A stretch of 64,000 nt of DNA from positions 62,001-126,000 of IMG/VR virus record IMGVR_UViG_3300027793_000052. One strand, written 5' to 3'. Made by a program: the position numbers and the translations under genes. The notes under the pieces are model-generated. The model did no database searches, was not told the DNA's origin, and saw only the letters and a program-made list of their open reading frames with translations. Positions within the stretch are counted from its first letter, which is position 1. Each line of letters opens with the position of its first letter. This document shows positions 44,940-48,617 of this stretch, piece by piece.

Positions 44940-45179
44940 ATGGAAAATAAAGAAATGGTAAATCACCCGCAACATTATGGTGGTAAAGATAATAAATATG
45001 AGGCAATTAAAGTAATAGACGCGTGGGGTTTGGGGTTTTCTTTAGGAAATACCGTAAAATACATATCTAGAGCAGGTAAAAAGAACCAAGAAAAGGAGTT
45101 AGAAGACCTTAAAAAGGCATTATGGTACTTAAATCACCATATCCAAACATTAGAGAGTAAACTGAAAGAAAATTCGTGA
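44940..45179 (+). CDS. DUF3310-family protein
   Basis: VNHPQHYG, GN.VKYISRAGKK, EDLKKALWYL. Confidence 0.8.
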   Translation: MENKEMVNHPQHYGGKDNKYEAIKVIDAWGLGFSLGNTVKYISRAGKKNQEKELEDLKKALWYLNHHIQTLESKLKENS

Positions 45180-45182
45180 TAT

Positions 45183-46889
45183 TTAATCACCCCACACCCA
45201 TTTTTTATTACCACAATCCCAAATAATGTTGTAACCACGTTCATACATTATTTGTTTTTCAGTCTTATTCGGATCATAACCATCTTTAATTAATTTATCT
45301 TTCCTAAAATTATATCTGTGCATTCTAACCAAGTCTTTGAAATACCAATAATTTAATTCGGTATTTTTTAAAAATTTAAAGCCCAATTTTTCATATAAAC
45401 CACCATCAAAATACCTGTTATCGGAATAAGATACGACATTTTTTGGTTTATAATTTTGTATGAAATGTCCGAACAATTTTGAAGCCCCACCAACTATTTT
45501 TGTGTTTAATTTATTACAAAATCTTAACATCTCATATTCATAATTGTTGTTACCCACACCTGAACGATTACCGAATGTCATAACAGAAACCAATTCGTCT
45601 TTATAATATAAACCCAAATTTATAGACGCGTTAACAGACCCTTGAATGTGGTTATTACCCAAAAATTTCGATGATTCTTTATTGGTTATTGTTTTTATAA
45701 CACACTTTCTTGCGAATATATTGGTATCGAATATGTTTAAATTAGCTTTTATAATAGATAATACAATATCTTTTTTAAATAACCACTCATCTTCAAAAAT
45801 ATGTAATAGTTTAATATTTTTATCTTTACATAATAACGTCTTATTTATGTGATATGTTTTACTTTTATTTATTTCACTATGCCAATACAATCCATCATAT
45901 TCTATGGCTAAATTTTTCTGCGGTATGAAAATATCCAATTCACAACCACCGAGTATCTTTTTATTATTAATCTCAACTAACATCCCAGTCAAATTCTCTA
46001 TATAACTAACAATATCTCTATGTGGTTTGGTGTAGTTTGATCCGTTAAGTGGGAAACAATTGATGCATATTTCATACCCCAACCTATTTCTTTGATTAAA
46101 TAAATAATTGTCTATTTTAAAAATTTTGTCACATTTATCACATTTTAATGTTAATACTTTATTTTCGTAATCAATAAAAGTATACCCACTGAAATTATTT
46201 AATTTATCTATTATTTTGTTTTTAAAAATCACATTTTTAAACTCTTCACTTTGTGAGTAGTTCTCTACATTAAATTTTGTTAAATTAGTTTTTTTAGATT
46301 TTTCTTTAACTTCTTCTAACTGAAAAGGGTTTGATACGCCGTATTTTTTAATAAGATTCTCTTTTCTTAAATTCTTTATATCGTCAGAATACCAATGGTG
46401 GGTAAAACCGTATCTTTCTAAATTAGTTTTTTTTACTTTATTTTTTATTTCATCATTATGTAAACTACATGTTACACCATACTTTTCTAAATTAGTTTTT
46501 TTTACTTTATTTTTTATTTCATCATTTCTTAAAGGACTTGTTACACCATATTTTTTTACATTAGTTTCCTTTATTTTATTTTTAGTATTTTGGTTATTTA
46601 CACCACATTTTATAGAACAGTTTTTATTATAACCCTTTTTTAGTGAGATAAATTTCACATCATTTACCCCACAAACCTCACATTTAGGTGGTTTGTTAGT
46701 ATTATTTATATATAAATAAATTTTCTCTTTAAAAGTTAAGCTGTCTTCTTTATTGAAGTTTATTATTTTTGAGTATAAATCGTAGTTATTGTCCCGTAAC
46801 CAACTTTCTCTAACCCTAAGACCGTTATTATTTTCAGTAAAATAATCCAGTAAATTTATATTATCCATATTGTATGACTTATTTATCAA
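45183..46889 (-). mobile_element. Hef-like / Vsr-type homing endonuclease
   Basis: KTNLEKYG repeats; ELDIFIP..NLAIEYDGLYWHS; FARKC; GGASKLF; IWDCG. Confidence 0.75.
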
Positions 46890-46943
46890 TAAATATATTC
46901 ATTTTTAGCCAAAGTCAAATATTTATTTAAAAAAGTGTAAATA

Positions 46944-47060
46944 ATGATAATATCAGAAAAAATATTTGAAAAGATCCTGATAGAAAGTGGAATACGTAAT
47001 ATACGTAATTTGTCTTATAGATACGATAAGGCAAAAATCTACTTTCATCAGGATCTTTGA
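46944..47060 (+). pseudogene. N-terminal 38-aa segment of the DHH phosphoesterase (not in track)
   Basis: ATATTTAT upstream; MIISEKIFEKILIESGIR...KIYFHQDL-stop; continues as DGV after an 11-nt offset. Confidence 0.7.
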
Positions 47061-48379
47061 GGGAACTTGATGGTGTTACAACGGCTATAGCTATGAAAAA
47101 ATACCTAGAAGATAACGGTATTAAGGTTGTAGAGTGTGAAGTGATACAATACGGTGACCAAGAATTTTCCATTAAAAAACCAATGGCAAGAGGTGATATC
47201 ATGCCAGTTTTAGTTGACTTCGCTCACGGTAAACCGATGTTTGTTATACATACAGATCATCACGATAAGCAAGTAGGTGCTGAAGCTGGAGCTTCCAAAT
47301 CATTTAGACACTCTAGGTCCAACGTCGAGACAATTTCTCAAATAATATCAACTAAAGAATTATTCCCTAGTTTTGATATTAATATGATTTCCACTATAGA
47401 TAGTGCTAATTACGCTAAAATGGGTATATCTCCTGAACAGGTGATGAATTATGTATTTGGGTTAGATAAAGAGAAAAGTTTAGAGGATAACAAAAAGGCT
47501 ATGGCTCTTGTTTGTAATAAACTTTTGTTGGCTTATAAAAACAAACCAAGATTTTTAGAAAGATTGGTTATGGAATCTAGTCCATCATTGTTAAACATAT
47601 ACCAAAACATAGTTAGAATGGCTAAAGAAGAGGGTTATTCCTCACCAGAGGTTATGTCACAATATTCTAAAGAATATGGTGAAACTATGAAGAATAGTGA
47701 AAATGTGAAATATGATGAAAAAACAGGTATTATTTCACAATATGGTGGTGGTTCTATGATTAAACCCGGATCTTATGACAGATACGTACCTTTTAAAAAC
47801 TTTCCTGACGCTAACTTCTTAATTATAGCTTGGCCTTTAGGTTTACTACAGGCATCATGTAACCCATTTAAACCTGAAAGGTCTATAAAGGGTATAAATT
47901 TGGGTGAAATAGCACAGGAAGTATTAAAAAAACACGAACAGGAGTTAAAAAACACAATAATAAGTGTAGACACTTTAAAATACTTCGCCGAAAAACACAA
48001 ATCTTTTTCAGAGGAGAGTGTTGGTTTTACATTTAAAGATTTAATGTCACTATATGGTGATATTGGTGAAGGTGTTAGGGGTTTAAACACAATTCCAGAA
48101 GGTGCCGCACCTGATTATACGGTTGAAAGATGGCAAAACGCTATAAAAAATGTGATGGACAAACATTACTCAACTTTGGGTGAAAGAGAAATTAAGGCAT
48201 TAAAAATGTTGTCTATAACTGGTTGGGATATTATCCAAGCAAACAGTGGGGGACACAAATGTATAACTAACATATCGGGGTTAATGTATTTCGGCAAGGA
48301 TGGTGTTCTTTGGCTTAAAAAATTACAATCCGAATTTATTGAAGAATTAAAAAACTTAATATTACAAAATGAAAACTAA
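47057..48379 (+). CDS. DHH-family phosphoesterase, main body
   Basis: LDGV, VDFAHG, IHTDHHD, SRSNVET, SGGH. Confidence 0.75.
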   Translation: MRELDGVTTAIAMKKYLEDNGIKVVECEVIQYGDQEFSIKKPMARGDIMPVLVDFAHGKPMFVIHTDHHDKQVGAEAGASKSFRHSRSNVETISQIISTKELFPSFDINMISTIDSANYAKMGISPEQVMNYVFGLDKEKSLEDNKKAMALVCNKLLLAYKNKPRFLERLVMESSPSLLNIYQNIVRMAKEEGYSSPEVMSQYSKEYGETMKNSENVKYDEKTGIISQYGGGSMIKPGSYDRYVPFKNFPDANFLIIAWPLGLLQASCNPFKPERSIKGINLGEIAQEVLKKHEQELKNTIISVDTLKYFAEKHKSFSEESVGFTFKDLMSLYGDIGEGVRGLNTIPEGAAPDYTVERWQNAIKNVMDKHYSTLGEREIKALKMLSITGWDIIQANSGGHKCITNISGLMYFGKDGVLWLKKLQSEFIEELKNLILQNEN

Positions 48380-48617
48380 ATTAAAACAAATTTTACTACA
48401 AATATTCACAACCAAAGTTGGTTGGTTAGGATTTTCTATGTTTTGTGCCATATTATTTGGTACAATAGCGGAAGATTATGAATGGGCACAAATACCTTTT
48501 ATTTTATCTTGGATTTGGCCGGTTCTTTATACTTTAATTGGTATCACATATGCTTGGATTATAAACCCAATTAGACAATACAAAGAAACTAAAAAATTAA
48601 AACAAAATAAAAAATGA
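48369..48617 (+). CDS. small membrane protein
   Basis: two TM segments. Confidence 0.6.
   Translation: MKTKLKQILLQIFTTKVGWLGFSMFCAILFGTIAEDYEWAQIPFILSWIWPVLYTLIGITYAWIINPIRQYKETKKLKQNKK

Follow-up and report, generated by a model that had tools for sequence, protein, structure and literature searches.

Essentially two systems of utilised translational bypassing are known, namely the T4 gene 60 cassette family and the byps of yeast mitochondria, the latter being 27-55 nt long. The gene 60 cassette was still called unique in a 2022 survey (10.1101/2022.08.31.505936), and a 2016 review knew of no natural utilised in-frame stop-hop (PMC5009743). Low-level stop-hopping without stimulatory signals, in which 9 nt give one residue, is experimentally established (10.1101/2024.12.09.627546; PMC5009743).

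The window, as we call the whole 64,000-nt stretch of viral DNA analysed here, carries a gene whose metal-binding motif is interrupted by 11 bases, in the order Leu codon, stop, five bases, Leu codon (Table 1). This anatomy is shown. The upstream part, ORF1 (46944-47060 with the TGA, 38 aa), closes with ...IYFHQDL-TGA. Coding then resumes in the frame of a 440-aa ORF starting with TTG at 47057 (ORF2). Since the ORF2 frame is +2/-1 relative to ORF1, read-through or a +1 shift cannot join the two. A -1 shift joins both frames, but IYFHQDL is replaced. Skipping 11 nt (47058-47068) yields a gapless HQDLDG, collinear with about 150 uninterrupted relatives. Among the 80 nearest IMG/VR relatives, 78 agree with the joined motif, as do two huge-phage records; in all of these, H(Q/M/K)D(L/T)DG is uninterrupted. 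ORF1 and the N-termini of uninterrupted relatives align residue by residue.

Table 1. Features of the interrupted gene and its surroundings, in window positions
Feature	Position	Strand	Remarks
ORF1: first 38 codons of the DHH-family gene, take-off codon included	46944..47057	+	MIIS...KIYFHQDL
Take-off codon CTT (Leu; x of the DxD motif)	47055..47057	+	
Coding gap: TGA stop (47058-47060) and GGGAA (47061-47065)	47058..47065	+	
Landing codon CTT	47066..47068	+	
Resumed coding GAT GGT GTT (DGVTTAIAM...), remainder of the likely DHH/DHHA1 phosphoesterase; motifs D, DHH, GGH	47069..48379	+	Stop 48377-48379
Promoter-like ATATTTAT motif, leader short or absent	46919..46943	+	Left end of the stretch common to other 11-nt carriers
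RNA hairpin	47045..47073	+	
Free-standing homing-endonuclease-like gene (DUF7487 repeats, PD-(D/E)xK-like region)	45183..46889	-	ORF intact
ATATTTA 7-nt repeat flanking the endonuclease-gene insertion	left copy 45179..45185; right copy 46919-46925		

The insert is real in both DNA and RNA. Two other IMG/VR contigs and one JGI contig have it in identical form, and it occurs without any indel in contigs of six further runs, four of DNA (from different years and studies) and two of metatranscriptomes. The metatranscriptome contigs of both runs leave the intergenic promoter uncovered, the RNA contig of run X15 starting at 46944, and the transcript retains the insert. These independent DNA assemblies and metatranscriptome contigs therefore exclude an assembly error and an efficient removal at the RNA level. 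The support comes from contigs, not from raw reads (the raw-read run X22 contained no phage reads), and a rare spliced form is not excluded. Scans of IMG/VR and JGI metagenomes for the exact insert retrieved the same phage only. An earlier note, made from the sequence alone, had described the 38-aa ORF, the CTT-TGA-GGGAA-CTT stretch and the 11-nt skip restoring HQDLDG, all of which held for coordinates, frames and relatives. Its statement that neither a prfB-type +1 shift nor read-through restores the frame held as well, and the assembly error it had listed as an alternative is refuted by the contigs of the six further runs.

Carriers among other phages surfaced only after N-terminally short homologues (P0039, P0055) had been noticed. 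Related freshwater jumbo phages yielded 21 different junction haplotypes, every one at the same site, and these fall into three classes. The 6-nt class reads CTT-stop-CTT, in frame, with TGA, TAG or TAA as the stop. The 8-nt class reads CTT-TGA-CG-CTA/CTG. The 11-nt class, to which the window allele belongs, reads CTT-TGA-N5-CTT/CTA, with GGGAA, CGGGT or CAGGT as N5. This recurrence in three lengths is shown, and so are its invariant features. Coding restarts directly 3' of the CTN codon in all classes, whatever the frame. The take-off codon is CTT in all carrier haplotypes (21/21), as opposed to 2/76 uninterrupted haplotypes (3%), 69/76 of which have TTA or TTG at this position. The landing codon is CTT, CTA or CTG in all carriers. 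When the middle codon was left unconstrained (NNN scan), it was TGA in 17, TAG in six and TAA in one of 24 contigs and a sense codon in none; therefore, the stop inside the gene is under selection.

About 3-5% of the sampled relatives carry the insert, and both ORFs are intact in 20 of the 21 carrier haplotypes. The ORF1 residues RY.KA(K/E)(I/V)YFHQDL are kept in carriers while synonymous sites vary. Carriers also share the upstream codons ATC TAC ... CAG, which need not be functional and may simply be inherited from a common ancestor. In the L175 group, a single carrier lineage, an invariant Ser is replaced by an additional in-frame TAA and 14 of 130 conserved columns are changed; L176 and L181 deviate at 10 and 18 such columns. 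Decay is a possible explanation for all three. A scan for TTR-stop-TTR, looking for covariation of take-off and landing codons, gave a single unrelated match. In the 318-kb genome, scanned for further codon-stop-codon hops, CTT-TGA-CTT was found only here, although AT-richness makes this search noisy. No carrier was found among GTDB genomes, so there is no clue to the host. As a separate observation of relevance for annotation, gene callers split or truncate the interrupted DHH genes.

With moderate confidence, we favour the view that a single enzyme is made through a "stop-hop", a form of programmed short-range translational bypassing. There is no evidence from proteins, peptides or ribosome profiling, and both the hop and its efficiency are inferred. 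The ribosome would translate ORF1 as far as Leu-CUU (47055-47057), after which UGA would occupy the A site. The peptidyl-tRNA-Leu would then release the mRNA, the message would slip by 11 nt, and the same tRNA would re-pair with the CUU at 47066-47068. Decoding of GAU after landing would give ...IYFHQD-L-DGVTT..., with 14 nt specifying one Leu, and the predicted tryptic junction peptide of the hop product is IYFHQDLDGVTTAIAMK. All three classes are explained solely by hopping from CUU onto the CUN that follows. A restart at TTG would be in the wrong frame in the 6-nt class, and read-through and frameshifting each leave one class or more unexplained. Carriers do not conserve the next in-frame ATG. 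One point against the hop is that hops without stimulators have been reported only at a low level in E. coli (10.1101/2024.12.09.627546).

A hairpin around the take-off, stop and landing codons would probably help in the 11-nt alleles, while the 6-nt version would need none. The hairpin is marginal in the window (-9.9 kcal/mol, z -1.9, with 11/200 shuffles folding as well) and more pronounced in the remaining 11-nt alleles (z -2.1 to -4.2). All three codons lie within it in the 11-nt alleles. Because it relies on G-U pairs, it exists in the sense RNA only, and a G-to-A change within the class preserves one pair. In the CGGGT alleles, the hairpin top (3 bp and loop) measures 11 nt. No such hairpin is present in the 6-nt class, the 8-nt class or the uninterrupted relatives. 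The phage encodes a tRNA-Leu with the anticodon UAG; a single tRNA-Leu(UAG) should read the whole CUN box by wobble. The peptide preceding take-off, RYDKAKIYFHQDL, is the conserved sequence of the family and bears no resemblance to the KKYK signal of gene 60. Regarding expression signals, the hexamers ATATTT, TATTTA and ATTTAT are the commonest upstream of ORFs in this genome. A Shine-Dalgarno-like reading of GAGGG/CGGGT was considered and rejected, as the upstream motif occurs in 5/272 ORFs, below background.

The product is likely a DHH/DHHA1 phosphoesterase, as judged by fold and motifs and not by Pfam thresholds; its enzymatic function is inferred. Alignment A2 shows HQDLDG (after joining), VDFAHG, TDHHD and SGGH as invariant motifs. 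ORF2 alone had no match in Pfam or PHROGs, and a sequence-profile search against the PDB returned noise, so the assignment needed a fold search. Using the fold of the L005 homologue, Foldseek gave DhhP, PggH, NrnA, GdpP and RecJ as best matches (probability up to 1.0, E 3.6e-4). The full-length L005 protein missed the gathering score of PF01368 (22.8 bits, cut-off 28.1), and a few relatives have a precomputed PF01368 match.

The gene is likely alive in the window phage, although its activity is inferred. The ORF2 frame is intact over 436 codons and 90% identical to L005, without any derived change at conserved columns, and the gene is transcribed with the insert. All 8 of 8 population SNPs are synonymous, and seven lie on insert-spanning contigs. 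Three clustered SNPs in this population may represent a single recombination patch.

The insert does not travel alone. A 5' segment of about 150 nt, comprising ORF1 and the insert, is far more similar among carriers than the gene body: ORF1 of the window shares 86-91% nucleotide identity with other 11-nt carriers, compared with 70-72% for the gene bodies, and the similarity to carriers L167-L172 starts exactly at 46919. Together with the scattering of the carriers over the gene tree (they are polyphyletic), this shows that the 5' cassette has spread horizontally. The dS between carriers is 0.05-0.7 for ORF1 and 1-2.4 for ORF2. The cassette is thus much younger than its host gene bodies; therefore, the intact downstream ORFs may partly reflect a recent invasion, and the dN/dS of ORF2 between carriers cannot date selection after the insertion. 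The insert forms the 3' end of this cassette (promoter, ORF1 and CTT-stop-gap), which would recombine between related jumbo phages.

In the window, a homing endonuclease gene lies next to the cassette (phrog_3339 "homing endonuclease", E 1.9e-135; Pfam DUF7487). Its insertion is precise, with 1,733 nt (45186-46918) relative to L005 and L170, whose empty sites have one ATATTTA copy, and it ends 25 nt upstream of ORF1. At this distance, co-conversion could carry the cassette along. The endonuclease gene has four paralogues in the genome; its nearest relative is just 44% identical, therefore the donor cannot be identified. It is absent beside the site in the other carriers (L167-L194), i.e. insert and endonuclease do not co-occur, and in L005, L019 and L060 a related endonuclease gene is located downstream of a DHH gene without the insert. 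A self-protecting target-site insertion would involve adjacency, which is seen here, co-occurrence across relatives, which is not, and an endonuclease that cuts the uninterrupted allele only.

The reason why the cassette is kept is likewise inferred. It possibly protects a conserved target sequence from an endonuclease, or serves dosage control. A bolder reading, which we regard as unlikely, is that CTT-stop-CTN forms a self-spreading "hop cassette", a gene head of about 150 nt that is swapped in to break a nuclease target at almost no cost. The target, as part of the same joint claim, would be a conserved DNA site of homing endonucleases or of another nuclease. Efficient hopping over 6-11 nt by ribosomes during these infections would keep the cost low, and the unusual tRNA-Leu(UAG) of the phage, with its short variable arm, might possibly aid the hop. 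If this were true, bypass would also couple the dosage of the DHH enzyme to the tRNA and release-factor state.

Among the alternatives to the stop-hop, a selfish or neutral scar survives best, yet we consider it unlikely. The cassette would inactivate a dispensable DHH gene and persist by moving into fresh intact copies, through recombination or endonuclease co-conversion, possibly destroying an endonuclease target on the way; intact ORFs would then indicate recent arrival. In favour of a scar are the young age of the cassette, the polyphyletic carriers, the adjoining homing endonuclease gene in the window, the low share of relatives with the insert (about 3-5%), and the nonsense codon and many conserved-column changes of the L175 group, with L176 and L181 deviating too. 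A dead gene, however, has no reason to keep a stop (24/24 contigs, three different stops), a CTT take-off and a CTN landing codon, nor to keep the ORF1 residues despite synonymous variation. Moreover, 20 of the 21 haplotypes are intact even though cassette dS reaches 0.7, all eight SNPs are synonymous, and no conserved column of the window has a derived change.

A two-chain enzyme is very unlikely. Here, ORF1 would stop at the TGA and a coupled restart at TTG (47057) would produce M-R-E-L-D-G..., giving a 38-aa peptide and a 440-aa chain that assemble, each contributing part of the DxD motif. This is supported by the TTGA overlap in all 8- and 11-nt alleles, where TTG is in frame, and by the insert differences between L168, L169 and L170, which are synonymous in the ORF2 frame (ACG/ACA, CTA/CTT). 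Split phage enzymes beside homing endonuclease genes offer a precedent, i.e. T4 gp39/gp60 and the split NrdA (10.1101/2022.08.31.505936). In the 6-nt class, however, TTG is out of frame and no restart codon is conserved, the +9 codon being ATG, GTG or ATT. The model also leaves unexplained the duplicated Leu codon, and CTT specifically. The residues encoded by the insert are not conserved (R-E vs T-G), the TTG sits in a hairpin loop without an A-rich leader, and tails like those added to split T4-type enzymes (10.1101/2022.08.31.505936) are missing.

A programmed -1 frameshift is all but excluded. It would take place on the A-run GCA AAA ATC (47031-47039), with the hairpin as stimulator, and yield ...DKAK-NLLSSGSLRELDG.... 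The ORF2 frame is open from 47030 and the hairpin starts about 6-7 nt past the A-run, but the sequence does not conform to the canonical X XXY YYZ heptamer, the invariant IYFHQD strand would be lost although ORF1 keeps those residues in the zero frame, and the in-frame 6-nt class, lacking a hairpin, would not be rescued. An assembly or sequencing artefact, or an 11-nt excision from the RNA before translation, would fit with any 11-nt deletion in the repeat restoring the frame and with the 11-nt hairpin top of the CGGGT alleles, but can be practically ruled out by the insert without indel in four DNA and two metatranscriptome runs and its identity in IMG/VR and JGI contigs.

Several further claims of the earlier note can now be judged. 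The ribosomal hop between matched CTT codons over the stop is supported by the 21-haplotype comparison; as no product has been seen, this means best supported, not proven. The TTG-coupled two-chain enzyme fails for the in-frame 6-nt class and remains possible for the window allele alone. The remnant of a mobile insertion held in part, since a spreading 5' cassette ends with the insert and, in the window, an endonuclease gene adjoins it. The DHH enzyme, which the note had assumed, is supported by fold and motifs only, Pfam thresholds not being reached. Of the checks it proposed, the homologue alignment revealed 78/80 nearest relatives to be uninterrupted and three junction classes among carriers. 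Inactivating mutations in the 3' part, named as a possible refutation, were not seen at conserved columns of the window; the L175 group has its extra TAA.

The resemblance to T4 gene 60, with its 50-nt bypass and MobA cassette, which had also been pointed out from the sequence alone, held for the architecture and failed as homology. In both cases, the stop directly follows the take-off codon, about 40 codons of the ORF precede the interruption, which falls within a metal-binding motif, and the interruption belongs to a horizontally spreading element. A stem-loop including the take-off codon, as in T4, is clear in the other 11-nt alleles, only marginal in the window and absent from the 6- and 8-nt classes. 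As in the carriers, the T4 bypass is often present without an endonuclease (10.1101/2022.08.31.505936); the window has one next door. The gap, however, is 50 nt in T4 and 6, 8 or 11 nt here, the codons are GGA and CUU/CUN, respectively, and the host genes encode a topoisomerase and a DHH phosphoesterase without sequence homology. The DHH cassette has neither an added N-terminal extension nor an identifiable nascent-peptide signal. Unlike the HNH enzyme MobA, the endonuclease here belongs to another family (phrog_3339/DUF7487), is divergently oriented and occurs in only one carrier lineage. Finally, no experiment stands behind the DHH hop. If true, it would provide a second, independent link between bypassing and mobile DNA.

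[quoted passage not shown] They differ in occupying many genes of one organelle, as opposed to one site of one gene family in many phages, and in requiring relaxed mitochondrial decoding and an unused codon in the A site. Another short coding gap in a phage gene also has a Leu codon as its key site (PMC5009743); there, the key codon is UUA and is tied to a rare tRNA of the host, only a single lineage is concerned, and the gap is also unproven. The +1 site of prfB (RF2), CUU UGA C, combines the same shifty P-site codon with UGA, and the C is found in most alleles here. In contrast to prfB, +1 slippage in the window meets a stop after three codons, and there is no upstream Shine-Dalgarno stimulator, in a phage that does not use Shine-Dalgarno sequences.

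Closest in form are the synthetic stop-hops studied in E. coli by Weiss, Atkins and Gesteland from 1987 onwards, in which 9 nt specify one amino acid, exactly as in the CTT-stop-CTT class (PMC5009743; 10.1101/2024.12.09.627546). Those were engineered and of low efficiency, whereas the DHH motif is natural and conserved in many phages. If the hop is confirmed, the DHH alleles would constitute the first naturally occurring family of short stop-hops, and minimal, stimulator-poor hopping would be in use in nature. The alleles of 6, 8 and 11 nt, with and without hairpin, would then offer a natural series for dissecting how peptidyl-tRNA lands.

The virus record containing the window (G000:C1:62001-126000) measures 318 kb, has a GC content of 30% and carries 22 tRNA genes. 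In its interrupted DHH-family gene, the break falls where strand beta-1 ends and separates the Asp pair of motif I; it leaves a 5' part (ORF1) and a remainder in another frame (ORF2). The earlier note had claimed an 11-nt interruption inside the DHH motif, which is confirmed by the anatomy and by DNA and RNA contigs alike. Its claim that skipping 11 nt restores HQDLDG also held (deletion of 47058-47068), as did its claim that neither read-through nor a +1 shift can join the two parts, because the frames are offset by +2/-1.

Features of the interrupted gene, its junction classes and related endonuclease genes
Feature	Position	Strand	Details
ORF1	46944-47060	+	38 residues, ending KIYFHQDL
Take-off codon CTT	47055-47057	+	last sense codon of ORF1; TGA directly after
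Second CTT (landing)	47066-47068	+	preceded by GGGAA
Downstream coding, DGVTTAIAM...	to 48379	+	frame of a 440-aa ORF formally starting at TTG 47057
Homing-endonuclease-like gene	25 nt upstream of ORF1		568 aa; phrog_3339, E 1.9e-135
11-nt class			CTT-TGA-GGGAA/CGGGT/CAGGT-CTT/CTA
8-nt class			CTT-TGA-CG-CTA/CTG
6-nt class			in frame; CTT-TGA/TAG/TAA-CTT
Same-family endonuclease genes, uninterrupted relatives	L005:2237-3427, L019:4321-5499, L060:4871-6055		just downstream of the DHH gene
Same-family endonuclease genes, this genome (G000:C1)	144924-145775, 223245-224606, 232321-233877		

ORF2 alone matched no Pfam and no PHROG family. More than 4,000 homologues occur in metagenomes, a few with a precomputed DHH match and some fused to sigma-70 domains. 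L005, the nearest relative without the interruption (90% identical), reaches only 22.8 bits with Pfam DHH, for which the cut-off is 28.1, and the best PDB matches of its AlphaFold model (pLDDT 75) are DhhP, PggH, NrnA, GdpP and RecJ. The residues that never vary make up the motifs of DHH proteins: DxD, D, DHH and GGH. The sigma-70 fusions carry ECF-type domains (~645 aa; among metagenome homologues P0044-P0118); other members are fused to a SET domain (L176:7425-9566) or to peptidoglycan-binding and chitinase-like domains (L188:4703-7003). Gene callers give the interrupted genes (47057-48379 in the window) N-terminally short proteins, either 440 or 439 aa from the TTG or 427-433 aa from an internal ATG (P0001, P0031, P0035, P0039, P0055), and the carriers' database entries therefore lack motif I.

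The insert is real at the contig level. An identical sequence was found in two more IMG/VR contigs and one 318-kb JGI contig. When contigs of eight public runs were placed on 46700-48450, the site was crossed without indel in two metatranscriptomes (X15, X16) and in four DNA runs (X9, X11, X12, X14) that come from separate studies and years. This excludes the assembly error that the earlier note had left as an alternative; for a raw-read check, the single run tried did not contain the phage. The RNA contigs represent RNA and not contaminating DNA, because 46877-46935 is uncovered, and one of them starts exactly at the ORF1 ATG. As a side observation, metatranscriptome contigs stop one base short of an endonuclease-gene ATG, at 46869, and restart at 46944; a ATATTTAT-type motif lies ~25 nt upstream of many ORFs genome-wide, and Shine-Dalgarno motifs are depleted (5/272 ORFs). 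Together these suggest leaderless or near-leaderless mRNAs and a Bacteroidota-like host not using Shine-Dalgarno sequences. The phage (46944-48379) was also present at 97-99% of sampled words in five 2019 runs (X3-X7) labelled 'fungus metagenome', an odd label for a freshwater phage.

Among the 80 nearest IMG/VR loci, 78 have an uninterrupted H(Q/M)D(L/T)DG, the remaining two being copies of the window, and the motif is likewise uninterrupted in two huge-phage records. Homologues P0039 and P0055 start with (L/M)TGLDG, and on their contigs the architecture recurs with another gap (CTT TGA CGGGT CTA and CTT TGA CAGGT CTT). Pattern scanning and another search for homologues extended this to 21 distinct junction haplotypes in three classes, all at one and the same site. 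With the middle codon left free in the scan, it was a stop in 24 of 24 contigs (TGA 17, TAG 6, TAA 1) and a sense codon in none. Take-off CTT occurs in 21/21 carrier haplotypes vs 2/76 uninterrupted ones, of which 69 have TTA or TTG. ATC, TAC and CAG at codons -7, -6 and -3 are found in 90-100% of carriers vs 5-13% of non-carriers, and the remaining synonymous sites of the cassette, the ~150-nt gene head, vary among carriers.

We favour, with moderate confidence, programmed bypassing over a short gap (a stop-hop), carried by a 5' cassette that is mobile; the hop is inferred, without protein evidence. The peptidyl-tRNA-Leu would hop from CUU to the next CUN and yield HQDLDG in every class, and by sequence comparison no other mechanism considered would do so. 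Low-level stop-hopping without stimulatory signals has been demonstrated on synthetic sequences (10.1101/2024.12.09.627546), and a 2016 review knew of no natural utilised stop-hop (PMC5009743). The phage encodes tRNA-Leu(UAG), for which wobble could allow pairing with CUU, CUA and CUG; it would read both take-off and landing codons. Both phage tRNA-Leu, UAG and UAA (77 and 75 nt, G000:C1:14142-14341, outside the window), have a variable arm of 5 nt, unlike ordinary bacterial tRNA-Leu, and their charging identity is uncertain.

Mobility of the gene head rests on sequence comparison. In 11-nt carriers, ORF1 shares 86-99% nucleotide identity vs 70-80% for the gene bodies, and across all classes dS is 0.05-0.7 in ORF1 vs 1-2.4 in ORF2. 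At least four gains or losses are required to explain where the five 11-nt carriers fall on the ORF2 tree, and 6-nt carriers are similarly scattered. Similarity between the window and L005 rises from ~63% to ~85% immediately past the insert. Therefore, the ~150-nt head moves horizontally. The upstream endonuclease gene forms a precise insertion of 1,733 nt with ATATTTA on either side. Its link to the cassette is suggestive at best, because L170 has the cassette and an empty endonuclease site, and the other carriers examined lack a neighbouring endonuclease gene. By analogy with T4 MobA and gene 60 (10.1101/2022.08.31.505936), co-conversion or target protection may be involved. Genes of the same endonuclease family (39-51% identical) accompany the DHH gene in several uninterrupted relatives and stand at three further sites of this genome; the DHH locus looks like a hot spot for them.

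Of the rivals, a selfish inactivating scar survives best, yet is unlikely. In its favour, the gene bodies are older than the cassette they carry, so intact reading frames alone do not prove function. ORF2 of the window is intact, without derived changes at conserved columns relative to L005; all eight population SNPs are synonymous (seven on contigs also spanning the insert), the gene is transcribed, and 20/21 carrier haplotypes are intact. In the exception, the L175 group, a further TAA replaces the invariant Ser of SRSNV and 14/130 conserved columns are changed; this second in-frame stop may reflect gene decay or a further recoding site. The group (L175:1-6484; also L180, L186, L192, L193) is a single carrier phage of the 6-nt class, recovered in identical form from five samples. 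Stronger arguments for a living gene are inferred from sequence comparison: a stop kept by selection, a take-off CTT that never varies and residues conserved in ORF1.

A split enzyme restarting at the TTG overlapping the stop, also raised in the earlier note, is very unlikely. The TTG, 6, 9 and 4 nt from the landing codon in the 8-, 11- and 6-nt classes, is in frame in the first two and out of frame in the last, and some carriers have GTG or ATT in place of the in-frame ATG that follows. Removal of the insert from RNA is all but excluded, since the contigs without indel rule out efficient removal, if not rare forms. No better placed is a -1 frameshift at the A-run, which would lose the invariant IYFHQD and not help the in-frame class. 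Read-through would leave the 6-nt class with two more residues within DxD and the other two classes out of frame, and stop-codon reassignment is excluded by the presence of all three stops at the site and of none elsewhere in these ORFs.

[quoted passage not shown] It can form only in the sense RNA, because several pairs are G-U, and the change between CGGGT and CAGGT keeps one pair (U-G to U-A). The window hairpin (-9.9 kcal/mol, z -1.9) is, taken alone, weak evidence for bypass; other 11-nt alleles reach -11 to -15.3 kcal/mol (z -2.1 to -4.2). No such hairpin was found in the 6- and 8-nt classes or in uninterrupted genes. The 11-nt hairpin resembles the take-off stem-loop of T4 gene 60 (PMC5009743). 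The comparison with gene 60 made in the earlier note holds for the proposed mechanism, yet not for membership of the gene 60 element family, and against the literature searched the stop-hop cassette is an undescribed variant.
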